Under the pieces are notes generated by a model. That model saw nothing but the letters and a program-made list of their open reading frames with translations. It searched no databases and was not told where the DNA came from. Below are positions 3,961-60,755 of a stretch of 64,000 bases of DNA, piece after piece; position 1 is the first letter of the stretch; each line of letters opens with the position of its first letter. The position numbers and the translations under genes are program-made. Source of the stretch: Lepidodermella squamata (Eukaryota; Animalia; Gastrotricha); contig JBLDXI010000038.1 of the NCBI GenBank assembly GCA_047495785.1, forward strand, positions 682,001-746,000. The letters run 5' to 3'.

Positions 3961-4575
3961 TTACCCAACATGATCAATCGGTTCACCTCATATTTGCCGC
4001 CAAATACGTATCATTTCCTATTTAATTCTTATTTGGTTAGTAACTAAACCTGCGCTGGCGGATTCTGAGGCAAAACAAGAAAAACGTGGTAATTCGAAAC
4101 ATCGTCTGACAGTCCCCGCAGCAAACCTTCTAATCAAAATCACAAATCGCATATCAACAGACAGCTAAGAACACAAGCATTCGAACGGTGAAAATATTTC
4201 GCTATTATCACCAATGGCATCAGAGATATCGCGGGGACAAACTGTTCAGTTGATGCATTGACGAATAGTTTGAAAAACTTATATTGATCATGGAAAACTC
4301 TAGCTTGACGATTATTTTATGCTTCGAAGTTCTAGACTGAGTAATAATAAAGGAATAAGGTCATTCCTTTTCCTATTTCCTATTCCTTTCAAGATAAATG
4401 AACGACGAGTCGAATGGTATCAAGATTAGCCATCATAGCCATCAAAGCAGCTGAGAAACTTAACTTCACTGTTTACCAGTGAAAACTTCCTCGAGAAAAA
4501 TTAGCGCCCCAATAAGTTACAATAAATCGCGCAGCACCACTATTCACTTGTTAAAGGTCAAAGCAAATTAATTAC

Positions 4576-5581
4576 CTGGTCGAGTGAGGGCGGGGTCGAG
4601 GGTGTCAGGTCTGTTGGTGGCCATAAGCACCTTGATGTTACCGCGAGGGTCGAAGCCGTCGAGCTGGTTGATCAACTCGAGCATAGTACGCTGCACTTCG
4701 TTGTCACCACCAGCGCCGTCGTCGAAACGCGCACCGCCGATCGCGTCGATTTCATCGAAAAAGATGATGCAGGCCTTCTTGCCGCGCGCCATCTCGAACA
4801 GTTCACGAACCATGCGCGCACCCTCGCCAACGTATTTCTGAACGAGTTCAGAGCCGATAACACGGATGAAGCAAGCGTCGGTTCGGTTTGCGACAGCTCG
4901 CGCACACAGCGTCTTGCCCGTACCAGGCGGGCCGTAGCAAAGAACACCCTTCGGCGGTTCGATACCGAGGTTGACGAAACGTTCCGGGTGGAGAAGCGGC
5001 AGTTCAACGACCTCGCGCAGCTTTTCAATCTGCTCCTTGCAACCACCGACATCCGCATACGTGATATCAGGCTTCTCTTCGACCTGCATCATCGTAACGG
5101 TTGGGTCGATTTTAGGCGGGAGAGGCAGGTGGATCTGGTACTTGTTACGATCGACACCAACTCGCATGCCCTCCTCGATATCGGTCGGCGCAACATTCTC
5201 GCTGAGTTCGACCACGAATTTCGCGAACTGCTTAACATTAATGATGTAACGCGGTTCGTCTGGATTGGTGTTGATGATTTTCGTACAGCGAGCGACTTGT
5301 AGCGGCTGTTCGGTCTGCAGCACTTGTTTATCGGCAGCCAAATCCCAGAGAGCGGGCGAGGCAAGACCAGTATCGGACTCTTTAATACCCGATAGTTCGT
5401 TCACCTTCTTCACTAGACCGTCGATTTCTTCCTGGCATTTTTTAATCGAACGGGTGTACATGCCAACGCCATATGTCTTCAAAATTTCAATGTCACCAGC
5501 GTCGAGAGCCTGGATCGGCTTTTCCTCTTCTTCCTTAACCTCATTCGTCTTACGCATGTCGTCCCCCAGGTAGTCAGGCAT
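4576..5581 (-). CDS. PSMC2: 26S proteasome AAA-ATPase subunit 7 (Rpt1), first coding exon; remainder presumably left of the window
   Basis: MPDYLGDD N-terminus, Walker A GPPGTGKT, Walker [24 protein letters not shown]; the ORF reads into a splice donor CCAG|GTAATT at 4575. Confidence 0.96.
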
Positions 5582-5772
5582 TCTGAATATAGGAGATTAA
5601 CACCAAATATAATAAAACCTAGTAAAAGAATTCAGTGTAAGTCGACAAAATTTTAATAATTGAACAGTGACCAGGCAGCGCCATGTCAAAATAGAAACCG
5701 TATATCAAACTTGAACCAATGTTAGTTACCCTGATTTTAGTACTCCGGTGAAAATTAGAAAAGGTCTTGACT

Positions 5773-6594
5773 TCATTCGTCCTTCAGACTAGGGTCGAGT
5801 TGAAACATACACTCGGCTAGTTCGTGACCATCAAGCCAGAAGGATGCGTTGCATTTGAGCTCCGGATCGTTGTCCCGAGGGCGCCGCTTAGATGTCTTCT
5901 TCCCACCAAGACTCTCCGTAATAATCGAATGCAGAGTGTAGCCCGTCCGCGCGAATACGTGATGTTTTTGCGATGGTAGCTGAACAGCAGCGCACCAGTC
6001 GTTCCACCCATCGCCGACGTACCATATTTCCGGCTCGCCAAACTGTCTGAATTCGTTGATTATCCGACTGATTTCCGAGCCTTTGCATAAATTCTCGGGG
6101 CAATCTTGCGTAGGACATGAGCCAGACATCGCCCGAGTCGCCTGTTCCTCCTTCGGACTCACCCGCAGACGACCAACTTCATCGAATTCAGCATGATTGG
6201 TTATCACACACGTAAAATATTGCCGTAATTTATTCGCCTCTAGAGCCGTTTCGATGAACAGAGTATTGGCATCAGAAAGAACCATAAGCCGATGATCAGA
6301 TCTGGCGGCTAATTTGCGTATAAGCTCGGGAATGCCGTTTATGAAGGGTAGGGTGGCTAAAGCGCGGCAAAATTCGTCCTTCTGAACAGAATGATCCACA
6401 TGTAAGTGATCAAAGATTTTGTTCATATGCCCAAGCCATGAGCCGCCCGTATACGTGATTGGGACTGGCTTGCCATTCGTCAGCATCGGGAATATGTGCT
6501 CATCACTGTTGCAGTTGATCAATGTGTGGTCGAAGTCGAAAATGACTAAACGTTTACAAGTATTGGTCGAGCCACCATTGCTTGACTCGGTCAT
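5773..6594 (-). CDS. PHOSPHO1/PHOSPHO2-like HAD phosphatase, paralogue A (intronless; alternative ATG at 6627)
   Basis: Motif I DFDHT, motif II LSDAN, CPENLCKG, motif IV YVGDGWND. Confidence 0.92.
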   Translation of the reverse strand: MTESSNGGSTNTCKRLVIFDFDHTLINCNSDEHIFPMLTNGKPVPITYTGGSWLGHMNKIFDHLHVDHSVQKDEFCRALATLPFINGIPELIRKLAARSDHRLMVLSDANTLFIETALEANKLRQYFTCVITNHAEFDEVGRLRVSPKEEQATRAMSGSCPTQDCPENLCKGSEISRIINEFRQFGEPEIWYVGDGWNDWCAAVQLPSQKHHVFARTGYTLHSIITESLGGKKTSKRRPRDNDPELKCNASFWLDGHELAECMFQLDPSLKDE

Positions 6595-6789
6595 TACAGG
6601 GTAAGAAAATTTCCTATACACAAACATGGAATTAAATTAAAACCAGGTCTCATGCGGCGATGACCTGACATCAGGTGGTGTCATTGCCACTCTTTCCCGC
6701 TACGATAAAGCGGAAGCAACCAGAATTGGAAAGATATTAAATGCGCGAGGCGATACCCGGTATGCAAGATAGAAAGGGCTTTACACATA

Positions 6790-7832
6790 CAGGGTGTTCA
6801 AGAAATAATATCTAATCTAATTATACAATGAACTTTAACCAGACAGCACGCGATAAATATTTTCAAATTTTGAAAGAAACTGGACGGCGAGTGCTTTGAG
6901 TTTTTGAACTAGTTCAAAAACCCGTCTTTCCTCAATACTTTCGCGCCAATATTCAGTCTTTTTTAGGGACAAAGTATTTAAACCCTTAAACCTGAAAAAT
7001 TGAAGTTTAGTAAGTTCAGTAAGACGAGCAAGCAAACGCGTGCCCTGTTAGGAATTCACTGGTTCAAAGTTCAATGGTAAATAATTGTTGAACTATTTTT
7101 GGAGTTGGACATTGGCCAGAAGAAACGTGATATTTTTCCCAAAGTCGCGCTGTCATAGGTCATAGCAGAAAATTATTTTTCATGATAACCGGAATTTTTT
7201 TTTGCTTGAAATTTGCCCAAATCATGCAATTTTTAAATTCAACATATGAAATAAGATTTGAAATATGAAAAAGTAAATCAACGGAGAATAGGATGACAAT
7301 TTTAAAGGACCGGAAGATCATGAATATTTCTTTTTATCAGTATTGGGTGAAAACAGTAGGTTTTCTACCGTGTCGAGGTATGATAGGCTAGGGTTTTCCA
7401 CGGGTCGAAAATCGAGGATCGACCTGGCCCGTCAGTAAATATCTTCAAACAGACCGAGCGGAGAAATATGGCACACTAACCCAGTTACACCTCATCCCGC
7501 CCACGCCATAATTATTGGCGCACTTCTCAACTAACCAGCTATTTTTGGCAGAGGGGACCACCAGTGGTAATTTTGATGCTTGGTACTTGGTAAAACGGAT
7601 AAAACCGTCCAGGCAGAAAACTGCGTTTTGAGTATTAAAATTGCATTTTTTTCATTTGTTTTTTCTTTCTCTTAATCCGGCACACGATAAAAAAACATGC
7701 TAGAAGCAGACGTAAAACGACGAGGTCAAGGTTTGATGTCAAAGTGGAAATAGGTCGCTGTCATCAATCGCGTGTCGTCTGGCCAAAGTTCAATTCCAAA
7801 AATAGCCCAACTATTATTTCTTGAACACCCTG
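6790..7832. mobile_element. Tc1/mariner-type non-autonomous element (MITE)
   Basis: TIR CAGGGTGTTCAAGAAATAA...TTATTTCTTGAACACCCTG with TA on both sides. Confidence 0.9.
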
Positions 7833-7897
7833 TAGTTATAGAAACAAATGCGCAAATATTAAAAAGAAGTGAACACTATAGTGCAGATCGAGCCATT

Positions 7898-8907
7898 TGT
7901 ACAACAAAACATTCAGCAATACATGATAATTTGATACTATTACTGTTGTTACTGTTACTCTAACTGTAACCATATTTGCACATTTCAAAGGTAGATTCGT
8001 GATTTCAAGCAGCCCGAAGCACAAATACGTCTCACGAGCAAATATTCATTGCGTTGAACTTCATCACAATTACATGGTAGTCGAGCGTTTTTAATATAAA
8101 ATAAAAACTAATAAAAACAAAATCCGAGAAATTCACATCAATATTATGGCAAAATTAGTGATACAAATAGTGTATCAAACGCGCATTTCCAGAGTGGGCA
8201 TACAACAATATCTGCAGCATATAAGAGGTTGAGCTACGATATAATAGCCTCTTAGTAAAGCGAGATTGCACTGACTCTAGTTCTTCAATATCTTCTAGGA
8301 GACGGGGAATAATTGGAAAGACAGTAGTCGAGGAGTGAAAATGTATGATTTGTGTACGCCTGAAGCACAACGATTTGGATACTCTAATACGATCATGCAG
8401 CTTGACACTAACTTAGAAATCACGGACAGTAGTAACGCGATTGCAACGATATCAACTTCTTTCGAGAGATCAATATATATAGAACAATCACATTTAGCAT
8501 TGGCGTGTTTCCACATATATCTCACGCCATATCGAGACATCTCACCCTGTAGCAACAAGAATAGACCGATAACGCGCAAGTTTCTCAATGAGAATCGCTG
8601 GTGGATTGTAAGGTCCACCATAGGTTTTTCTTTCATTCCAACAAACAAAGGTGAAAAAATATTCTATAAGTAAACTGTTCTTTGTTATACGCACCAGCAA
8701 ATATTTTCTGAAAACTTCTGCTTTTCATCGATTCATTTTCATACACATAGCCGGTATAGCAGGTCGGGAATTAAATCGAAGCCATCAGTAGTTATAAAGA
8801 TCCCCAATCTTGCTGTTTGACAGTAAGTTCTTATCATACGCCATGCTGTCTCACACTCATCCGGTTTTCAGTTGTAAAGGCAACTAGCAGTTTTGTGGCG
8901 AGCATAA
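7898..8907 (-). repeat. CR1-like LINE 3' relic plus ~50 bp of Gypsy sequence; duplicate of 18831-19826
   Basis: Long near-identical match to 18831-19826; IEELESVQSRFTKRLL motif. Confidence 0.88.
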
Positions 8908-9399
8908 TCCGATGACGTGTTCCATTTTTTTTTACAAAATTAGCAAACAAGCGTTTGTTACGATTTGAGAGTCGCAGTATTCAGAAGTTATACACAACAT
9001 TTTACGTTTTTTGCGCAATTTAGGGTAAAGTGCCCCAAATCTGCAAAAAACTGCAGACTTTTGAAGTGATCTTTATCGAAGGCTGAAGCCTGCGGGATGT
9101 CACTCTTTAGCTGGCAGGGTGTCTTCACCCTCGAACTGCATGATTCCAAAAGGAAATTTTGGAAAAGCTCACCATTTTACATAAATTCAAAAACTGCAAA
9201 TTTTGAGCACTATACCCTACGCCGAGGCACCTCAAACAACAAGACTCCCTTATATAGCCCATGTAGAAAACGAGTGTAACAAAGATCAACAGATAAACCC
9301 AGGTCTCTATCCAGTCAGCAGACTCACCCGGAAGCAGCGTGGTCATAAAATAGAAGCGCCGCTCATCTTCTTCCCAACGTCACAGGTGCTTTGATCACC

Positions 9400-9780
9400 G
9401 CCTGTTTCTTGGACACCACCAAATAAGCCATCTGTTACATCGTAACAACTATCAGGCCGAATAGCGTCGACGAGGCTATATCGGTGGAGATCGGTTCAGA
9501 CAGTCGCTAAACACTTGCGCGAACTCAACTAGTACGGCACGCATGGCGGCGGCGTCGGCGTCACTAAGACCTATCTTTGAGCGAGACTTAAGGTCTTCGA
9601 AGTCGTCCGGCACCGAGTCGGACGCGGAGGGCGGGGCGAACGAGAAGGATCAAACGGTAAGGTTGACCTCGGCCCGGTTCACGAACAGCAATACCGCCGA
9701 GAACAACGCGGTGCTCGTCGCCCCTCACGACAAGGACGGGCTGGTCGAGTGGGTCGAGGTTGGAGGCTAAAATAGCCTAG
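9400..9780 (-). mobile_element. Gypsy pol fragment (protease-RT linker)
   Basis: Minus-strand translation SFAPPSASDSVPDDFEDLKSRSKIGLSDADAAA aligns with SFAPPSQSESFPDDVRALIDRSVVGLNPDDGAA at 32.4 kb. Confidence 0.6.
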
Positions 9781-47418: not shown

Positions 47419-50400
47419 TTTTTAAAATGATTTTCAGCTTTTATTAAAAAATTCTAAAAGAAGAAATAAATCAAATAATCTCTCAGGTAGAAAACAGTTA
47501 CAGATAACAAGATGAGTTGGTAGCCATAGATGGATAAATTCAATCATTATTCACTAAAGATTACTAAAATAGATCTGAAGATTGCTTTAAGAACTAAGGC
47601 ATAACGCATACATGCCGACCAATTAACGGTCAACGTTCAGCTAGTAAGGGATGTAAATCTACAACTTAAATCTTGAATAAATCTAGAGCAAAAGTAACGT
47701 TGCTTGCCAATTACTCTTTTATCAGTGCTACAAGGCAAATAAAACATAAGCGACAACCTAAATGTGAAGGGTATAGGGTATAGTGGCAGGTGCCAGAAGA
47801 ATGTAGATAGCCAATTGAGTGAACGAGACAAGGAACGCTAGAGACAAATAAAACAGGTCAAAATCTAAACTTAGAAGTTTACTGCGAGCATACGCATACA
47901 TCAACGATTAACGGAAACGGGAAACGATTGGGCTAGGGGCTTGTTTGCATATTCACCGTAGCCATGCCAGCATTGAAGTCCTATATGCACTCTCGGCTTT
48001 AGCAACTTAAAACTTAGGGTGAGGTGAAAGATGCAAGAAGCTCGAAACTCGAAACTCAGCTTCGATCTCATAAGTCGGGCGGGGGCTACTGTCAAAACTT
48101 CATTATTTCGTTTTTGCGCTAAGATTTATTTTTCATACATGTTTATATTAAAATTATACAGAAAATAGACGTGTTAACTTTTAAAAAGCTTTACATTTTA
48201 CGGTAATTAATTTTTATAAATTCTCTGGATATCGAGGGTGTGGGAGCTCGTCATTTCCCGGGATCACCTAGGTCGTTGAAGTTAGCCAGAACCGGTGTGT
48301 ACCGAACTTAGCCAGAACGTGAAGCCGGTGAGCTATGGTCTCAAACCCGACTTGGCTGAAGATAGCTGATCGAGCTGAGTTGGCTAATGGAAAGAATTAC
48401 TCAAAAAGTCGTTTCCAAACAAATGATATGTCAGGTTAAAGTGGGAGACAGGGTACCCGGCACGCGGCGAGCACTTTAAACCTGTTTTTCTCGAGTTAGA
48501 AGCGTTTTAAAAATAAAATAAAATAATATTTATATATTATTCGGCGAGATTATTCGGGCATTGCCTCTTGTAAATAATTCTCCAAACTAGTCTTTTGGTA
48601 GCTTTCTTGCTACGACGGCGTTTGTGGGCTTCGCTGAGTGAGTGGAAAAGCCACCTGGGCGCTGATGCCTGGGCCCTGGAGAAACAGTCAGCAATAACTA
48701 GAGTACCAGGGGTAGGGATTTCAATTAAGTAGTTAGTAAACCAGTTCAAACTTTCCTAGAGCGTAAGCTCGCGATTTTCTCACAAGCTCCGCCTTATGGC
48801 GAAAGCTTGAGTCCGTCAGGGCGAGGAGAAATCGTAATTCCTGATCCTGATCCTGATCCTGAGATAATTTTTTTGAGCTATAATTTATTCAATTAGCTCA
48901 GATTGCATTTTTCGCCGTTTTTCGCCCGACATTTGTTGCTAGGGCGACGTTTTGAGGTTGCATACCGAGTTTTTAATGCTCAGGTCAGCGGCTAAGACAG
49001 CATTCAGTCCTAATTAATAGGAGCAATATGAATCTTGCATTTTGCAGACGTCTTCCATAGAAAATCATGATATCACGCTCTCTCATCCTGTTTTACTTGT
49101 GTTTTGGTTGATTATATGGAAAGTTCAACACTTTTACTATATTAGCAGCTTTACTCCGACGTCATTTGGCTTACAGCCAGAACCTATGGTGGTAAACCAG
49201 AGCATTTATCTGAAGTTCTGAAGACTATAAGAGCATTATAAGCTCTTTCTTTATTCACCTGTATATTTTTTCTTGATTTCATGTAGCCAAAAACATTGCA
49301 GCCAGCTAGAAAACAGTCGATTGCCTACTATCGTTTTTGCTACTGCAAATTCGCCCATCCGGAACCTTAGCTATGTAGCCGGAACGCTTAGCTGACTTCC
49401 TAGACACTTATTTTGCAACGCTAGTGCAGATTTTATCTATTCCAATGCTTAGCGCTGTTATTAGGCACGCCGGAACGACGGGTTAGACCTGGTTTGTTGC
49501 AGGATGTCCTCAAACAGTTAGCGTTGAACAATCGTCCATCCAGACCCTTAGCTGGTGAGCCGGAACGTTTAGCTGAAGCTGTCAGCACTTGAACTACTTT
49601 ATTTTATCAAAATTGATACTTGTATGCGCTGAATTATGTGTTTTGCTGCTTCTAAATCGCAGGCCGCAGCTACCAAATGCTCAAACATGTGATGTCAGCT
49701 AGCTCAGCCTTTAGCTCGGTAGCTCAAAAGTCTGAATGAAATTATTATCACTTTTCCCTATGATCTGCATCTTTGTATGTATTTTAAAGCGTAAAACGCG
49801 CTGAATGATAGAGTTGACCGGGTATATAACTCCGTCAGTTAGCTGAACTTGATGCTGATGAGCGAGCAGCATTTCTATATATCAAAATTGAAGTCTCATG
49901 TGATTTTAGACGTTAGACGTTAGAATTGAAACAAGAATTGCGTTGATTGATTCAATTTTCAGCTTCTTAGAGCTTTTAGAGTTTTAAAAGAGTTTGTGTT
50001 GGTATCACATTAATTTATCTTCATAATTGGTCGATGGATGCACACGATGACTGCCAGGTATGCAGTTTCTAGATGTTTTTGAATTTCTTATTTATTTATT
50101 TTACTCAGAGCATAATATGAACCGGATGCTCTCTATCATTGGCGTTGATCAAAGCTTGTTTTTTTCCTTCGCGTTGCCGCATGAAGAAGAAATCAGCAAA
50201 AAAAGAAATTTCAGGTATCAACAATTATTGCTCAATTTAATACGGCTTTATTCTGCCCTGCTTAGACTTCTGCTAATCACCAGTTAACGATGCGGCGAAA
50301 ATACTTGAATAGAGGTAACGGCAAACTTGATGTCGAGTTTTGATTTCATTTTTCTGCATTTTCAGGTCTCATTTTCGAATTTGACATCCTTGATGTCTGC

Positions 50401-50617: not shown

Positions 50618-53600
50618 TTAACCTCCCTTTTTGTAGGCTTTCACTGGTTTTATAGGTTGTGGCGTGGCGATATCGGATTGCTCACGTTGCTTTTTCCGGC
50701 TCATGCGACCAGGTTGAATAGGCGTGTCTTCTGGCGCCTGTTCGATCTCCTCAAGCGGCAACTCGACATCAATGTATCTGTACTCTACCCCCGCCAGTTC
50801 GATGAGAGGGCCGATAGCAGCCGGCTGGTTTGAATCATCACCGCGCCGCCGAACGCTGTAGTAATGTTGGCCGGTGATGTCGATTACCAAGTGACGGTAC
50901 TCCGCGACCTCAGCATTTGCGATGCGAAACTATTCAAGAAACATTATTAGTCAAGTCAGGCGTAAAAATCTCGATGCACTCACAACAACAGCGGTGAGAT
51001 CGGGGGCATAAACTACCAGGTTGGTCCTGTTGGGCAACGACAAGGCCTTCACTTCATTATGGTCTGCGAAATTACCACGGCTTGTGCGAACACGCTCAAC
51101 ATGTTCGTCGAATTGGATGAAATTCTCGACCTCGTCGACATCGAATAGGTCTGCATTTAAGAACATCTCGGGGTATTCGCTTGGAAATTGGCACACAGCT
51201 CGCGATATTGCATGAAGGAGGCTTCGTCTCCATTGTCCTGATCAGCATAAGCACGATACATGCAACTTCTGAAAATGGAAAATGAAATGAAAAATGTAAA
51301 ACGATGAAATTATCAGCTAAAGTACCCATCAGCACCAACAATTCGAAGTTCGAATTTTTTCTTGGAAAGTAAGTTGGCGATTTCGAACAATCCGTCAGGT
51401 AGGCCTGGAATCGCTTTCAGCTTTTTCGAATAAGCATGGTCAGCTGTTGGTTTTTCGATTTTCTCGTCCTTATCACCCTTTTTCTTTTCCACTTCTCCAA
51501 TTAGCTCCACCATTTTCTCATAGACGCCTTCGTAATAACGGGATTTGGTCTTCGGCTTTGACTTCTGCCACTGAGCAGTCAGCTTTTCGGTCTCCTCCAC
51601 CGTTAAATCTTCGATTCGAGACGGTTTCGGCGCGGCTGGCTTGGTCGTATCGTTTTTTGTCGGCTGCTCGTTTCCGACTTCGATTTCAGACCTGATTACG
51701 TTGCGGTGCTTGGTTTGAAAGGCCGTGGAGTCAGTTAAAACTTTGAAGAACACTAGCATGGTGAGGCTGGCATTTTCGCGCAAGATCTCATACACTTTGC
51801 TTAGACACAAATGCAGACGGTGATTGAAAGCTGAATTCTTGCGCTGATTAAACATGCTTTCCTGCGCGGCATTCGCGTAACGTGTCGCTCCGTCCGGTTG
51901 TCGAAATGTCCGACCAGGCGACGCAGCCCCGGTTTTAGATGGGTACCGAATTCCCGCGCAAACGAAGGGCAACAAGGGGGCAAAAACGTCGCGGATATGC
52001 TCGAATGCTACAGGTAAGTAAAGCGGGTTAGCCTCCTGCGACTGGAGCGATTGTTGATTGGGATTCGATAGACCATGCTGTTCACGCAATTCATCAATTT
52101 TTTGGCTACACAGGATAGCAAACGGCGAAATTTTCTTCAGCGGACCAGCCTCAGTGGAGATGAAAGTTTCCTGCGTGTCCGGCAACTCCCCGTCTTCTTC
52201 AGGCTGCGATTGAGCAATAAACTCATCGGAAACCAGTTTGTCGTAATCGACCGTGTCAGGTTTATCGAATTCTGCAATTTTCTGTTTCAGGCTGTCGAGG
52301 GCGCCGGGGACGATAAAATTCAAGCCAAATACGAGATAAATCAGTCCATAAATTTCGATAGCCTCGTCTAAGGTGGTGGCGTTTTGGAGAGCGCCGAAAG
52401 CGGTTAGAGCAATCTTTTTGACGTGTTTGGCAGATTTGGGAGATTTTCGCGCCAAAAATCGTGCCATTGCTGCCATGACATGCGAACAACACAGGTAAAT
52501 CAGGGTGATTAGCTTCAGTTGTTCGTTGCTACAACCGTTTTGCAGGAAATGGAGCAGTTTGGATAAGAAGTCCAACAAATTTGATCGGTTGAAAGCCTTG
52601 ATTATGCCATGCATGGAGGCGTAGCAAAAATCGATGATAATAGCACGTGGTCGCTGAACAGACTGGCCATTTTTCTTCGTTATGGCATCCCACCACATGC
52701 AGAAAAACGCATCGAATTCGTTGGCAGTGTGGGAGGTGGTGATAAGCTCGGCGCAGGCGAACGTTGGCAGGTTTGTTTCTTTCCCGTTAGCGCGAACATT
52801 AACGCTCTCAGACCACGTCAACGTATAATAAAGCGATTTATTATAGTCAGGATCGAACTTCCAAAGCGATCCGGTTCCGTCAAACTGCATGATAGGCCGA
52901 GGAAAGGGTCTAGTGGCTATTTTGCCGTAGGCCTCGAGCATCTCGTCCGTGAATAGGACCAAATGGAACCGGTCGCCGTCGCCAATATCTCGAATGTAAG
53001 GTTTTCCCTCGCTTTGCTCCTCTTTCCGACGCAACAGCATGTCAATGGTCTTGTCAGGATGTAGTCGATCTTTCAGGCTCATTTCGCTATGTGCTTTCTG
53101 ATAAGTGGACAACGCGTGACTTTCGCCAAATCGCTCGGCCATCAGATTTTTCACCTGCTCGAATTTCATTAGTAAGCTATGAATCAAATAATTATCAATA
53201 GCTAATTATACCTTATCAGGCTGTTCCGTTTCCAACAATTTTTTGGCTTCTAGTCTGATAGCTCCTTTCAGCGGACGCCGGATCGGATCTTCAGGTGGGT
53301 GGTTAGGCTCTCCAATACGCTGAAAGTGAAATTCCTTGTGACACAGCTTTTCCTCCTCCTCAAAGTCAGCCGTGATGATGAATTTTTCCGGACACTTGGA
53401 AACCGAACAATGCGCATTTATAACGATTGCCGGATCCAATGTTTTGCGAATTGATTGATTTGAGACTGAAATGGCGCATATTTGCCGCAACTTCTCTTCT
53501 AGCAGCTGATCATCTCGACCCCCTTGTTCAACTTCGAGCTTGGCTGTATGGCGCATGTATTCCTGCCAGCTTCGATTTAACACGTGGCCGTAAGTCTCGC

Positions 53601-54001
53601 CCAGTTCGAGAATGGTTGCCGTTTTTTTCCCGGTTTTCTTCATTTTGCTTGGATAGAAAGTCTGCCACCCTATCTTCCTCAACAACAATGCTGATCGTCG
53701 TCACGGCTGGGTTATTTGCTTGCTCGGTTGATTCGGACGGCATTGATTCAGCTGCGGTCACATCGCTGGACGACCGCTCGATTACGATCAAATGATTGGC
53801 TTTCAGGCGATTGTAGATGTGTTTACGATTTCTTTTCGTATTGGCATCTTTGCCCCAACCACGACCGATCAAGCGGCCCACGCATGACTCAGCCCTGCTG
53901 TGACCATCGCCAGCCGGGATCTTGTCCAAATTTTGCGAGGAAAGCCAGCGTTTAGCTTTGTCGATTATAATTGGGTCAGTATCTTTAATTTCGACTGGCA
54001 T
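50618..54001 (-). CDS. MULE transposase with a C-terminal OTU protease domain (~1070 aa; introns 53155-53211, 51269-51325, 50930-50983; 1-nt frameshifts near 53625 and 51180)
   Basis: CSVSKC...H..H zinc module; DDE core FDGTGS / IIIDF / LCCSH (CxxH) / NAAQESMFN; splicing gives VGADGSCMYRAYA...NFADHNEVKALS..NLVVY...GQHYYSV, the OTU Cys and His boxes. Confidence 0.85.
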
Positions 54002-54146
54002 CTAAAGGAAAATCAATATTTTCGAAAATGGCTCGTCATATTTTCTCAAAGCTCGATCAATCAAGAATCATACATTTTCTCGGTAATATCATTCGCCTCA
54101 TCTCACTCATTTTTTCAACACAAAAACCATTTTTCAGGTTAACTTT

Positions 54147-54758
54147 TCATTCCCTTCTTTCGCGCTTCCGCTTCTGAGCTTCTGAAAACTGCCGCATACG
54201 ATCTAGATCCTGTTGCGAAGCCTTAAGGTGGTCGATTGAAACGCTGATCTCACAGCCAGGACAAGTATCGTCCCATTTCAACGTACGGCCGCAACGGTAG
54301 CATTTTTGTGCTTCTTCGTCGACGAAATCTGGCGACGGCGGGTTTGCATGGACTCTTATACCCGGTCCAAGTTCGAAGGACTCCTATTGGAACATCGGCT
54401 TCTATTGAATACCCATCGACCAATTGTTAGAACTCACGCTAAAGGAAAAATCCGATTTGGTCGGACTAATAGGCTGCGCAGGACCGATAGGATTCGTAGG
54501 ACTGCTGGGCTGCGTAGGTTCGATTGTATTTGAACCTACGGTCTTTTCGATCATGCCGCTGGCTGCTAGGCGATTGTACACCTGTTTTCTGTTCTTCTTT
54601 CTGTTAAAATTTGGTCCAAATGTCTCAGCAATTAACCGGCCAACAAACGACTGGGGCCTTGTGTGGCCATCGCCAGCCGGTATTTTTTCCGGATTTCGAG
54701 AATCGAGCCAGCTTTTAGCTAGCTTAATGAACTCAGCATCGAGTATAAAAGTTTGCAT
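54147..54758 (-). CDS. Transposon accessory protein (~185 aa): transposase-paralogous N-domain, Pro-rich linker and C4 zinc finger; intron 54384-54437
   Basis: AKSWLDSRNPEKIPAGDGHTRPQSFVGRLI..KKNRKQVYNRL vs transposase AKRWLSSQNLDKIPAGDGHSRAESCVGRLI..KRNRKHIYNRL; AGC|GTGAGT..AATAG|GAG splice leads to KCYRCGRTLKWDDTCPGC..QKRKRERRE*. Confidence 0.75.
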
Positions 54759-54966
54759 GACTATTAAAAAAGAAGTTGATATCGATATAACTATATCAGA
54801 ACGTCTGGATCTTTTGAAACAACCATATGAAGATGAAATATTCGAAAAAAAACAACTTCTGCTAGCAATTTTTTCTCGTAATGCGTCCGCCTTAAGAATA
54901 AAGCCGAAAGCAAAAATGTTCAACAAAATGTGTCTTTTTTCGGGGCTGGAATTATTTCGGATAAAC

Positions 54967-57900
54967 CAAATCTGTCGCCCAGAATTAAATAAGTGCGCCC
55001 CTTTTCAAACGTCGCCCCAAAATTAAATAAGTGCGCACACATAGTAAATAACGTCGCCCCTGTTGCGTAATCGCCGCCCACAAAATTTAAATGTGCGCCC
55101 CAAGTGCGCGCCTTAAAATAAAACAGCGGTCAATGCGTGAATGCTGGTTTTCTCGGCTTGAATGCTAGATCACCTTTTTTTTTACCAAACATGCGAATAG
55201 TTTAATGGAAGCGGAAGATAGCGGCCCGTCGTCGACGCATCTTTCAGTTCAGATTACTTGAAATTAGTCCTAAGGCTGAAATGGTATTTTCTGATGAGAA
55301 ATCTTACAACCGATCGTTAGGGCTAATGGCTAACTGCATTTTTAAGACCAGGGAATTGAGACCCGTCAAGCGGTCTCCGCCCTATAGATATATCTCCACC
55401 TTCATAGTCACTATAGAAGACAGCGGCTGACGAATAATTATGATACACCTCGTTTCAAATGAAATTTGAAAATAAGACGGGGCCAAAATCGCTTGACGTT
55501 TCTCAGTTATTCTGGGGGATAGCTCGTCATATAGCATACGTATAGATAATAGAAAATAATATCGCATATTGCTGATTTCTTGAAAAAAAAAATCCTAGGA
55601 TAAGTTGTAAGCTGTTGATTTGTTGTTGCAGCTGTAGGTAGCGCGTTTATGGCGACCCAGTTAATGACCGGACACGGTCCGGCTCATCACGCAGCTAGTA
55701 GCTAAACCTTGGAGGAATAGAGATGGAGTGAGCACTGCCTCGTATCAACGCGCACTATCGTCTGACAAAGGCCGAGTGGCGCAGCAGGGCGCCCGCTCGC
55801 CTCGATCACGTGACACACTTTAACAGCCAATCAGCTCTCTAGCGTCCCTAGTTTTTGCTATGTAACACACGCATTTACGAAAACATAGCTTTATTTAAAA
55901 AGGCGCCGAGTCACTAATCATTTCTTCAGAAGGCGAACGCTTGGCACCTTTAGCACGTTTAAAATCGCTGTTCAGACCAGCGCGAAGATTAATAGAAGTA
56001 GGATTATTATTGTCGCGATCTAATAAAGTTATTCTTTTAGATAAAATATTTTGCAAAATTTTCACAATTGGCTGTACAAATTCCAGATTAGGTGGATAAG
56101 AAGGATTTTTCACAATTAAAGCCTTGTGCAAAATATCTGCGAACTCTTTTTGATACCAGATTTGGCGGTAGGGCGCAGAAATCGCCTCGCGAACAAGAGC
56201 TAGTACGTGCACGTTCGGCTTGACAAGGCCGCCGCGGCTCAGCCATACTTCGGGTTGACTGTTGTCCGGCTCCAGTTTCAGCTGGCGGGTGATATAACCG
56301 GCGACGCTAGCCGTAGAGCGATCGTCGGTGACGAGTTCGGCTGGCAATTCGACGCGCAAAAGCGGCTCGATTCGATTATCGATTTTCGAGAGTTGTTTCA
56401 GTTTTCGAGCAGTAGCGATTTTGAGGCTCTTGATTTTGTGCCGTTGCACATTCGCGCCTTTCGAAATGCCGAAATTTGACCCAACGTACCGTAGAACCGC
56501 GATTCGCTGAAGCAGCCGAGCCATCGTAGGGTGACGAGCTCCGCCCAACCCACACCGGACTTGGCTGAATAGCTGTTCTAGAGGGCCGCTGTTGAAGCGT
56601 GCCGTTAAGACGTATTCAACACCTTCGCCCAGCAACTTCTCCGTCAAACGAACGATGGCTTCGGTCGAAGTGAGAATGCCGTCGAAGGTTTGGGTCGACA
56701 ACTTGTTCTCCGGATTTTTCTGGGCACCCTGTCGGTCGCGGAGCCAGGTGCAGAAATCTCGGAGCCAGGTCAAGCGAGGGTCATTGACGCTGCGAAACGG
56801 GGCGAGGTTGTTGTTGCGCTTGCCAAGAAACCCGTAGCAGGAATTGATGTTGAGGATGTCGAACCACTTGTTGATCATCGAAATCACTGGCGCCATGGCT
56901 TGGGCATGTTGATAAAGAGGATGACCGGGCTGGAACTCGGATCGGCAGGCCTGAGCCATGGATTCGCTGAGAACTTCGGCCGCTCGAGCAACGCTCATTT
57001 TCAGCGAGTTATTCGATAGAATTTTCCGGATGTTGGTCGGATTGAATTTCTTATAGAGTCGCAAAATTCGGCGCGAATCGATGTTGAGGATGGCGTCGAA
57101 AACTTGCCACAGAAACCGCGAGCCATGGTCGTCTAATTCCCAAGATTTCTTTGTTAGATTGTTGCGAAGAGTCTGAAAAATTAATAATATTTTATTAATT
57201 CAAATTTCAAAATAATCCAACAAAATTCGGGAAAATTTAAAAAAAATTGAGAAATATTTTGAAATATTACCTATACCTTGAGCAGATGAGGAACGTCGAA
57301 AATGACCTCGAGAGCTTCGCCGCGGGCGTTTAGAATCGGAATCGACCGGAATCGACCGGAAATGACCCAACGCAAATGGCCAACGGCGACTCGACAAACC
57401 GCAACATGATGCACAGCGCCTTGGTTGCGGCCTCGTCCGGGTTGTCAGCAGCTCGGCCTACAACCATACCGTCGCCTACGACTTCGGTTTTGCCGTTGAC
57501 TGAGACCTCGTCGATTTCGACACCGAAAAAGAGATCAACGTGGCCGGCGAATTACCGGTTATCCGGATTGGATGACTCATGACGCCGGATAACAACCACA
57601 TCCGAGTGTTATCGGTGGATATCGATGTATATTCGCCTTCCAGCCCGCTGTTCCGGTCTTTGAACGCGCCTCTGGCCTGCTAGCCTTCAAGCTGATATTA
57701 ATCGTGATATTCACCCATGATATTCACCCGAATATTACATCATATTATCCTGTAATATTTCGGGTTTTTGTTGGATAGACCTGCATTATTCTCAAGCTTG
57801 TAAGGTAGGTCGCTGCAATTAAACCGGTCAATAACCTTAATATTATGATAATTGATCTATGTAGGATCTTGGCTTTCCGCGACATATAAGCACAAAAGTT

Positions 57901-58155
57901 GAAGTAAAGCAGTCAAAATATGGTCAACATATCCTTATCCCGTCCTGAAAACCATGCGAAAAAAATCGGCGACTCAAGCTTTAAATGGGGCGACATTATT
58001 TATTTTAAGGCGGCGTATTTCAAAATGCGCGCGGCTTAGCGTGTTGCAGCGCGGCGTTGCGTGAACGTGGGCGCGGATTACGCAACCAGCGCGCACTTGT
58101 TTATTAAAGGGCGCAAAACTGGGGCGCACTTATTTAATTTTGGGCGACAGATTTG
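54967..58155 (-). mobile_element. P-superfamily element nested inside the MULE
   Basis: 35-bp TIR CAAATCTGTCGCCCAGAATTAAATAAGTGCGCCCC / GGGGCGCACTTATTTAATTTTGGGCGACAGATTTG (1 mismatch), CA..TG ends, GCGCCC subterminal repeats; no TSD seen. Confidence 0.88.
55895..57700 (-). pseudogene. P/THAP9-like transposase: 3' exon intact (55895-57172), intron 57173-57276, 5' part deleted and disrupted
   Basis: IDEVSV, FDVPHLLK|TLRNN, KMSVARAAEVLS, INKWFDILN, YVLTARFNSGPLEQLFSQVR, VAGYI. Confidence 0.88.
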
Positions 58156-60189
58156 TACCCACCCGAATTATTTTGTTTCCTCCTTCCGATTCTCGGCAAT
58201 TTCTTCCTTCGCAGGAACGTAATGGCGAGTGCAGCTGTATTTGAACTCAATAACACAAAAAAGACAAAACCGGAATCAAGTTAACGTTTTATTTTATTCA
58301 TCGTGAAATAGCGAAAGTGAATACGAACATAAATCGAAAATAAACATAAAATGTGATCAATAACGTGCAATAGTTACAGTGCCAAACAAAAATTTGAAGC
58401 GATTCGGAGAAAAATTCATACCTACAAACCTCAATACTTTTGCAGTAATAATAACGGCAATTGAAATATGCTAAAATGGAAAACAGTTAACAAGAAAATA
58501 GAAATCTGCATTAGGGCCGTTTGAAGTCATTTTGAAATCCATTTTCTAGGAGGTCGGGTATGCGGTCTAGAAGCCGAGATGTGAATCTGTAAGAACATAC
58601 AATTTATTCGAATATCTGCGAAAAAAACGGGAACACGAACCGCTCAAGTTACGGAATTTCTATCAACAGCACTCACGATCATTTCTCATCGTCAAGGTGT
58701 TCCTTGTGCCACTGAAAATTCATAGCTCAGAGCAGGAACCTAGAATGGTGCATCAGTTTCAGTGATAACATAAACGAAATATTTCAGGAATTTCAGGAAA
58801 TTTACAAACCTCTGCTTTCTAACAGGTCCATGGCGTCTTATTCCCAGCGATAATCGAGATATCTAGATAACAGACGGTAACAATTGAGCTCAAACAAAAT
58901 CACAAAAAAAACCTATTGATGGCATGAAACTTGAAAGCTGATAGGCAACAGTGCGATTTCCCGTCATCAAGGGCTATTCTTATACAATCGGGCTGTTGTC
59001 ATACAATTCTCTTACAGTTGAATTTCATGTTCCAGGGGAACGCGGATGTAATAACTAGAAGAGATAAAATGCAACAAATTAGGTATTGATTTAACATTTA
59101 ACATCTTCTTCTCCGATTAGGTAAAAATATGTATCCCATGGCGCCAGTTAATCATCAACAACGATGCACCATCAAAAAGCAAGTTGTCTAGCTGACTTCC
59201 TCGATAACTTGCTCCTCCGGCTTCGTGCCTTCGGTCGGGAAGCGTGTGGGCGGCGGATAAATTGGCAGGTAGATGATAGGGGGCTGATGAAAATTGTCGG
59301 GTTTGATCTCGCCTGTTCCGTCCCAGAATAGCAGAATAACGGGTTCAGGCATTATTAAAAATCAATATGGCTATCTATATGTAAGAATCAGAAAAAGGAC
59401 TGAAAAGAAAGTTAACAATAGTGCAGGAAAATATAACTGTTTAGTGATTAGATAGTCTATAGATAACGGTAGCCATAACACGAATTTACGCTCTGAGCTG
59501 TAAAACAATCGGAACGTTAACGAAGATGCATATGTCATATGATGCCTGCAACACTAGTTTTCATCAGAATCAAAACGCCGTGTTGAAGGCGCTGGTAGTA
59601 AGCAGAAAGAGTCGAATGGAGTCGAAAAACCCGAACCAGGCAGGCCTAATGCATTCAAATTATTGAAATTATGCTTGATACTATGTCAAATCAGTCTGGA
59701 TCGCCAGCCATAGGTCTGGCTGACAAAAAACATGTTCGCGTTTCGGGTAAACCCTTTTAACCGCGTCCAAGTTCAAGACACTGGAGTCGGGAAACGCGAA
59801 CTAGACTCCTATACCCAATCAAATTTAACATATTGTGCTACAATATTATCAGCTAAGCGGTCTGGATAGCTAGTTACAGGTCTGGCTGACGAGAAAACAT
59901 GATCGTCGCGAACTATTCGTCGATGTAACTATTCTAGCCCAAGGTGAAGTTCCTGGAGTCTCAAATATCCGAGCCAGACCCTAATAAAAATGTAATATGA
60001 CAAATTATGTAAGAATACTCTTAGCTAAAGGGTCTGGATGACCAGCTAAGCATGTGAGAACTTTGGATACCTCATAAAATGCGAATAAATACGGTCCAGC
60101 CCGCAAGAAGTCGAGATAATCAGACAAAAACCACACTCTGCATAGTGATATCGCGCCGGAAGTAAGGCCGGAACCTAGAATAAGCATCA

Positions 60190-60435
60190 GATATGGCGAC
60201 CTGCGGCTGCAGAGAGGCGTTGAGTTCCTTCTTCTTTCGCTCGCTCTTCGCCTTGATGATGGCGTCGTGTTTGGCCTGTTCGCGTAGGAATTCGAGCGTG
60301 GCTTGCCGGCACGCCTTTGTGGAAGCAGACAGCCTGATCTTCGCTGGTAGCTGGTTCCACCACTGGATGGCCTTGGTTGGGAACGAGCGCTGGCCTGTGG
60401 CCCGTTTAAATCGCCCGCCCAGTCTATTCAAGGTC
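60190..60435 (-). mobile_element. LINE 3' fragment inside the MULE
   Basis: RSFPTKAIQWWNQLPAKIR motif typical of LINE ORF2 C-termini. Confidence 0.65.
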
Positions 60436-60755
60436 GCGAAATAATATAAAAAATATATTTTCTTTCATAACTCAATCAGCTATTATCAGCTAAATATATA
60501 TTTTTTTAAAATATGGTTCTGGCTAATTTCGTTCTGGCTAACTTCAGGCGGATCACCTGACTCATACTTTCCAGCTCCCCTCAGAATCACCGAAACAACT
60601 TACATCTTGCTTCTAAGTAAACCAATTAGTAAACCATCTATTTCTTCATTGAACTTGGTTGAATTGGCTGAACTGCTGAACTGCGTCTACACGTGACTGC
60701 CCTATAAGTGTGCTGGAATGCTTAACGGCATTACGATTTATGAATGAATTCTGTG

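Follow-up and report, generated by a model that had tools for sequence, protein, structure and literature searches.

A small two-exon gene upstream of a transposase gene

The window, the 64-kb stretch of DNA that was analysed and to which all unprefixed coordinates refer, contains a small two-exon gene followed by a large transposase gene. All features of the two genes lie on the minus strand:

54438..54758, minus strand: small gene exon 1, 107 codons; starts with the ATG at 54758 and ends in phase 0 before GTGAGT
54543..54737, minus strand: small-gene N-terminal domain (N-domain), spanning residues ~8-72 and paralogous to that of the transposase
54384..54437, minus strand: small-gene intron, 54 nt, phase 0, GTGAGT...CCAATAG
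54150..54383, minus strand: small gene exon 2, 78 codons, with a beta hairpin, CxxC-x9-CxxC and a basic C-terminal helix
54252..54302, minus strand: four-Cys zinc-ribbon-like motif (C28, C31, C41 and C44 of exon 2)
54002..54146, minus strand: spacer, 145 nt, from the small-gene stop to the transposase ATG, ending in acceptor-like TTTTCCTTTAG
53209..54001, minus strand: transposase exon 1, with N-domain (53780-53974), linker and Cys/His-rich stretch
53158..53211, minus strand: probable transposase intron, 54 nt (or 57 nt, to 53155), with an in-frame TAA
51316..53157, minus strand: transposase core ORF, part of a 624-aa open frame
50618..51260, minus strand: OTU-like C-terminal exons of the transposase

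The small-gene ORF (54758-54147) comprises 185 codons over two exons and is closed by a TGA at 54147-54149. In exon 2, the cysteine motif reads C-Y-R-C, nine residues, C-P-G-C, and the basic tail KRKRERRE lies at the end. The small-gene ATG is located directly 3' of an acceptor-like TTTTTTAATAG|TC, and the transposase ATG at 54001, 145 nt past the small-gene stop, likewise directly follows an acceptor-like sequence. An initial annotation of this DNA had described just such a two-exon, 185-aa gene ending 145 nt before the transposase ATG, the CxxC-x9-CxxC motif with its basic tail, and acceptor-like sequences before both ATGs (TTTTTTAATAG|TC and TTTTCCTTTAG|ATG), all of which are present. It had also called the small protein catalytically dead, in agreement with the absence of any catalytic core-like sequence from the 185 codons. 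Searches and structure models of the small gene were run exon by exon.

The large gene has the features of a DDE, Mutator-like, OTU-tailed transposase, with its membership of the Mutator-like family being putative. D(G)T, vviD, CxxH and ES..K motifs are common to six genome paralogues at 21-24% identity, with a D-to-E spacing of ~258 aa that would fit other DDE superfamilies too. Neither the 624-aa ORF nor five genome paralogues matched Pfam MULE or Transposase_mut, and the 624-aa ORF had no Pfam hit of any kind; some of the paralogues match Pfam OTU just below the cutoff. An hhalign comparison of the transposase with a Pfam-positive MULE pair of the same genome was not significant (E=0.47), and its ESM-feature neighbours, which are MULE clusters (0.90-0.92), are a lead only. 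Within the genome, this transposase type is confined to one locus in two duplicated copies, the window and a second copy on C32, plus one 70%-identical fragment on C26. The intron at 53158..53211 is probable, as judged from its reading frames: its length class fits both copies, being a multiple of 3 in the window and one base longer in the C32 copy with a matching frame change.

In the window, the N-domain ORF of the transposase (54001-53531) is followed by an ORF in a different frame, with a +1 frameshift caused by an extra G in the GGG run at 53668-53670. This G is found in neither the C32 copy, where the N-domain continues as a single 264-aa ORF, nor the C26 fragment. As both lack the extra G, the N-domain did begin the ancestral transposase ORF. 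The initial annotation was thus right that the domain begins the transposase as far as the ancestral ORF is concerned, but not for the window, where the frameshift splits the ORFs. For the same reason, a programmed frameshift between N-domain ORF and transposase was rejected; by these comparisons the window frameshift is a copy-specific mutation or an assembly error. The OTU-like exon of the window is also broken, by a 1-nt deletion in an A run (51176-51177), and both homopolymer lesions could be assembly errors.

Between N-domain and core, transposase exon 1 carries a Cys/His-rich stretch (minus strand, 53330-53400; C-x4-C ... C-H-x3-H). It has no counterpart in the small gene and could, from its residue pattern, be the transposase's real DNA-binding finger. 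In the short flanks of the paralogous transposase loci examined, there was no upstream duplicate of their own N-terminus. At the C26 fragment, homology reaches no further than ~100 nt upstream of the start position; the ORF lying just upstream is unrelated, and we took it for a putative reverse-transcriptase fragment.

Both proteins share an orphan N-terminal domain

Exon 1 of the small gene and the first ORF of the transposase are identical at 39/81 positions (48%, BLASTP), and an E-value of 4e-25 places this similarity far beyond chance. On this alignment, the two N-domains are true paralogues, as the initial annotation had proposed for a ~65-aa domain; by our comparison, the shared domain measures ~65-80 aa. 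The domain has four matches in the 121-Mb genome, and the motif K-IPAGDGH-R..S-VGRLI...NRK..YNRL is invariant in all four copies.

An AF2 model built from the four sequences has helices at residues 8-20, 34-47 and 54-66 (pLDDT 69), and the fold models as a generic three-helix bundle. There was no match in Pfam, PDB or Atlas: the best Foldseek hit in PDB had E=3.5, neither the best VIA wide row (Z=4.9, rmsd 4.1, 62 aligned) nor the Atlas structures (TM<=0.53) were usable, and Atlas feature scores of <=0.83 are noise. Several of the weak structural rows are winged-helix or Myb-type DNA binders; at such Z, they would reflect a common helix arrangement only. The initial annotation had suggested checking for an HTH/Myb-like fold. 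The models do give a three-helix bundle, but with no significant structural match, and its view of the N-domain as end-binding was a presumption that a predicted fold of such a generic kind does not bear out.

An exhaustive HMMER search of 1.84 billion protein representatives with the N-domain profile found no true relative; all that it returned were two bacterial Sel1-repeat proteins, which were dismissed as false hits caused by their repeats. Exon 1, the 624-aa transposase ORF and the exon-2 alignment gave no relatives in other organisms when used in word searches.

The second half of the small gene is homologous to a terminal exon of another MULE family

Exon 2 has 26 matches in its own genome, counting itself and the C32 copy, and its full-length relatives are roughly 45-64% identical. 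All full-length matches begin at one and the same boundary, E/D-S-F-E-L. At six loci (L026, L027, L029, L030, L031 and L032; five distinct sequences, as L029 and L030 are identical), the preceding exon ends in ..SPTxSDFSF(S/N)|GT, followed by a 49-58-nt GT-AG intron. Conservation of the phase-0 junction in these six other loci gives comparative support to the splice model of the small gene, in which the last ~12 codons of exon 1 (..SPTKSDFSFS) are already part of this C-terminal module. The four Cys columns of exon 2 are invariant or nearly so in an alignment of 11 paralogues.

The six loci belong to a family that we call family A. Their upstream parts are not IPAGDGH domains and instead comprise a Cys/His zinc-finger N-terminus, an '..ILSTK.LL' block and AT-hook-like GRP repeats. 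In L031, the module forms the final exon of a gene with a MULE transposase core of another family: the stretch before the module is 44% identical (E=2e-34) to an ORF with a Pfam MULE match of 45 bits (cutoff 27.6), which also has a sub-cutoff SWIM-like stretch. Together, the relatives of exon 2 and the L031 core indicate that the small gene pairs a neighbour-type N-terminus with the C-terminus of another MULE family. The alignments establish its residues ~1-90 as an old paralogue of the adjacent transposase's N-terminal domain and linker, and residues ~96-185 as a conserved C-terminal module homologous to another MULE family's terminal exon, with the junction of the two halves falling within PTNPIGPAQP. 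The best explanation of the small gene at the sequence level is therefore a core-less mosaic 'mini-transposase', and this mosaic make-up is new here.

Because a conserved module naturally ends at the small-gene stop, a reading of the gene as a simple upstream exon of the transposase was rejected as the main one. The separate small ORF of the initial annotation thus stood up well, with its own stop at the native module end and an intron conserved in six other loci. Its intra-element duplication fared less evenly: the N-domains are paralogous, but the event was not a simple duplication, given a proportion of synonymous differences (pS) of 0.69 and a tail from another MULE family.

Exon 2 resembles Pfam DZR below the cutoff (E=8e-4, 20 bits, cutoff 27.3). 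Its AF2 model (pLDDT 73) has a short beta hairpin, Cys knuckles without regular strands and a helix at 57-77; Foldseek returned no match at E<=0.001.

Family A (L026-L032, on C42, C48, C33, C3, C4, C10 and C36; L031 is an example) is a MULE with a dedicated last exon, of beta hairpin, four-Cys ribbon and basic helix, that comes after the AT-hook-like repeats. Most of its copies are ~2-kb internal-deletion derivatives retaining the N-terminal zinc finger and the tail; L026-L028 are such internally deleted versions, of about 2 kb. For the family-A tail, no relatives were found in Pfam or the databases searched. Elsewhere in the genome, L055 (G000:C4:2806000-2815999, minus strand 4415-6879) looks like a full-length MULE (45 bits on Pfam MULE). 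It has a SWIM-like stretch below the cutoff and a C-terminus that is OTU-like by eye; ~650-bp tandem repeats lie after it, at 6750-9600.

The genes lie in a bounded element within a duplicated segment

The gene pair is enclosed by an element whose ends, together with one later insertion, are as follows:

48261..48318, plus strand: left 9-bp target-site duplicate (48261-48269) and left element end with two TTAGCCAGAAC motifs
60516..60558, minus strand: right element end with two TTAGCCAGAAC motifs and right 9-bp duplicate (60550-60558)
54958..58164, minus strand: nested insertion, 3.2 kb, in the window copy only, missing from the C32 copy

The enclosing element has GGATCACCT at both sides and an inverted TGAAGTTAGCCAGAAC with a second motif at each end, that is, the 9-11-bp target-site duplication and terminal inverted repeats of MULEs. 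Homology to C9:2088338-2088614 begins at 48271 and homology to C54:2884522-2884669 ends at 60547, so that similarity to these two independent loci stops within 2 nt of the element ends. The element claimed in the initial annotation is accordingly supported by the GGATCACCT at both sides, by the inverted TTAGCCAGAAC ends and by the point at which homology to C9 and C54 stops. Near the genes, internal copies of the terminal motif did not occur beyond chance. The nested insertion lies 200 bp upstream of the small-gene ATG and includes part of a P-element-type transposase (35 bits on Pfam TNP-like_GBD). It is bordered at 54960-55110 and at about 57970-58130 by repeats of a GC-rich/AT-rich, 'GGGCGAC...TTATTTAATT'-like kind. 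A ~100-bp repeat with >20 genome copies at 95-98% identity has been inserted at 60300-60400, just short of the element's right end.

Positions 28000-64000 of the window are colinear with C32:3785211-3849125 at 92-97% identity, including flanks beyond both element ends. The two segments are inverted relative to each other, extend over >36 kb and have many insertion/deletion differences; the segment is a duplication or an uncollapsed haplotype. As it is colinear, the C32 copy (at 3.79 Mb; L018) is not an independent insertion, the gene pair goes back to one ancestral locus, and 'second copies' of anything within 28000-64000 are to be read accordingly. Independent transposition of the C32 copy was rejected on its colinear flanks.

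An intact small gene occurs once in 121 Mb. The C32 copy lacks 54783-54499, which hold the small gene's ATG and N-domain, and 52759-52557, the second catalytic Asp region of the transposase, and its transposase is missing a further 11 nt and 9 nt close to the 3' end; lesions are therefore present in both transposase copies. The spacer is identical between window and C32 at 145/145 aligned positions, plus one 1-nt gap. Across 54002-54957, differences from the C32 copy number 2/173 in the 5' flank, 0/145 in the spacer, 6/294 in the exons and 4/54 in the small-gene intron (intron versus flanks, Fisher p=0.005).

Selection kept the small ORF open, in place or in its parents

Compared with its nearest paralogue, the small-gene N-domain has pS 0.69 and a proportion of nonsynonymous differences (pN) of 0.31; for exon 2 and its relatives, the values are 0.83-0.96 and 0.27-0.44. 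In a simulation with substitutions only, a neutral 185-codon ORF (both exons) remained open in 12% of runs at 0.1 substitutions/site and in <1% at 0.3. Together, saturated synonymous sites, a pN of ~0.3 and the simulation indicate that selection held the ORF open for most of its history. This selection acted on the ORF where it now lies or on parent genes since lost.

Since the split of the window (C38) and C32 copies, the small gene has 5 nonsynonymous and 1 synonymous change, an omega of ~1.4 that has no power, as it rests on six changes in the remaining 98 codons and one lineage is dead. For the transposase (window 51316-54001 versus L018 6648-9130), 27 synonymous and 24 nonsynonymous differences give an omega of 0.25 (binomial p=2e-6). 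Such constraint is unexpected for same-locus copies of a transposon drifting in situ. Possible sources are conversion by an active copy that has since been lost, constraint at the level of the host, or a window copy that still functions. With the C26 fragment as outgroup for transposase exon 1, 10/13 polarisable codon differences fell on the window branch (6 synonymous, 4 nonsynonymous).

A non-catalytic partner and its alternatives

By analogy with the P-element KP protein and IS1 InsA, the small gene may encode a non-catalytic partner of the transposase, a tentative reading whose likelihood we put a little short of even. The small protein would recognise whatever the transposase N-domain recognises, be it element DNA or a protein partner, and its zinc-ribbon and basic-helix tail would serve in nuclear entry and/or oligomerisation. 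As a repressor or a helper, it would then compete with the transposase or escort it, as KP or InsA. In keeping with this, the gene has a separate stop at the module's native C-terminus, as have all relatives, and the internally deleted family-A genes retain an N-terminal zinc finger together with the same tail. Against it, there is one intact copy, the sister copy has lost ATG and N-domain, there are no relatives elsewhere, no DNA-binding fold could be assigned with Foldseek, VIA wide or Atlas, and both transposase copies have lesions. The broader proposal of a Mutator-type two-gene cassette, in which a module-shuffled partner is kept by element-level selection as regulator or escort and is possibly co-transcribed, is rather doubtful. 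Conservation of the built-in regulator put forward in the initial annotation is at odds with a single intact copy, a sister copy without ATG and N-domain, and an absence of relatives elsewhere. An anti-silencing factor was a further candidate role named there. The associated operon/spliced-leader idea is so far hypothetical: the canonical nematode SL1 is absent from the genome at <=2 mismatches, and family-A genes have no acceptor-like site before their ATG.

The main alternative, quite conceivable if on balance improbable, is that the small gene is an inert relic, left by a second, diverged element of the same type, with an IPAGDGH-kind N-domain and a zinc-ribbon last exon, that lay next to or inside this one and lost its catalytic core by an internal deletion shortly before the segment duplication. 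Its open frame would then be due solely to the recent origin of both halves in transposase genes under selection and to a junction that is in frame by chance, which happens in one of three cases. The family-A MULEs of this genome do commonly have internal deletions that spare the coding 5' and 3' ends, the transposase type is so rare here that a vanished parent is plausible, the sister copy lost the small gene, and the changes since the split are 5 nonsynonymous to 1 synonymous. However, no closer parent of either half survives (best amino-acid identities 48-61% and 62-64%), although many decayed family-A pieces remain; moreover, terminal-motif copies do not flank the small gene, and its ATG context, intron and stop are all intact. 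That the locus is kept by the host rather than by transposition, as a domesticated gene pair, is decidedly improbable. The omega of 0.25 between the transposase copies would fit, as would the nature of the window's two frameshifts, 1-nt homopolymer differences of a kind that assembly errors could produce, but the element still has target-site duplicates and ends common to other loci, the second catalytic Asp region is gone from the C32 copy, none of the databases searched yielded an orthologue, and the small gene itself shows no such constraint. We consider it very improbable that splicing joins exon 1, additionally or alternatively, to the acceptor-like site before the transposase ATG; the product would be a transposase that carries the N-domain twice in tandem, with the small protein as just one isoform. 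The genes do lie on the same strand 145 nt apart, and as the exon 1 donor and TTTTCCTTTAG|ATG are both phase 0, they would join in frame; such a phase match has a one-in-three chance, however, and exon 2, with its stop, forms the natural end of a conserved module.

Should the small gene indeed encode a non-catalytic partner, it would show that exon shuffling between elements can build such partners, which are then maintained; the locus would also give access to two orphan modules without described relatives, the three-helix IPAGDGH domain and the tail of zinc ribbon and basic helix. If the gene is a relic, the locus counts among the ordinary by-products of decaying transposons.

Comparison with known transposon-encoded partners

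Truncated transposases with the targeting domain only are a classic means of self-restraint or self-assistance of DNA transposons. To our knowledge, those described are recent deletion products or frameshift/splice isoforms. As with KP and InsA, the small gene has a transposase N-terminal domain without the catalytic core. Neither deletion nor alternative expression of the element's own transposase gene accounts for it, however, because its N-domain is at synonymous saturation and its C-terminal half comes from a different MULE family.

KP is a 207-aa protein from small non-autonomous P elements and is among their repressor proteins (PMC7776569). According to the primary papers cited in that source, it dimerises, binds P-element DNA and inhibits the transposase. 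KP and the 66-kDa P repressor share with the small gene a transposase N-terminal domain, the lack of a catalytic part and a possible self-association part. However, KP arose by recent deletion, is still nearly identical to its transposase and sits on separate non-autonomous copies, whereas the small gene lies upstream of the transposase in the same element, is only 48% identical to it in this domain, and has a tail from another MULE family and no THAP domain.

In IS1 (InsA) and the IS3 family (OrfA), a small upstream ORF encodes the transposase's N-terminal domain and down-regulates transposition. There, the same codons serve both proteins through programmed frameshifting, whereas here two separate, paralogous coding copies exist in a spliced eukaryotic setting.

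Second genes inside Mutator-type elements have precedents in mudrB, the accessory gene of the maize MuDR element of the Mutator superfamily, and in VANB and VANC of Arabidopsis VANDAL elements, and the small gene is like them in this position. We know of no mudrB, VANB or VANC accessory protein that is a paralogue of its transposase's N-terminus. VANC is sequence-specific, non-catalytic and element-encoded (PMC5735166). In Pfam and database searches, neither the small gene nor the transposase had sequence similarity to any named family.

PIF/Harbinger is a two-gene DNA transposon in which a Myb-like non-catalytic partner provides nuclear import and end binding. The Harbinger partner supplies a domain that its transposase lacks, whereas in the gene pair described here the domain is present in both proteins.
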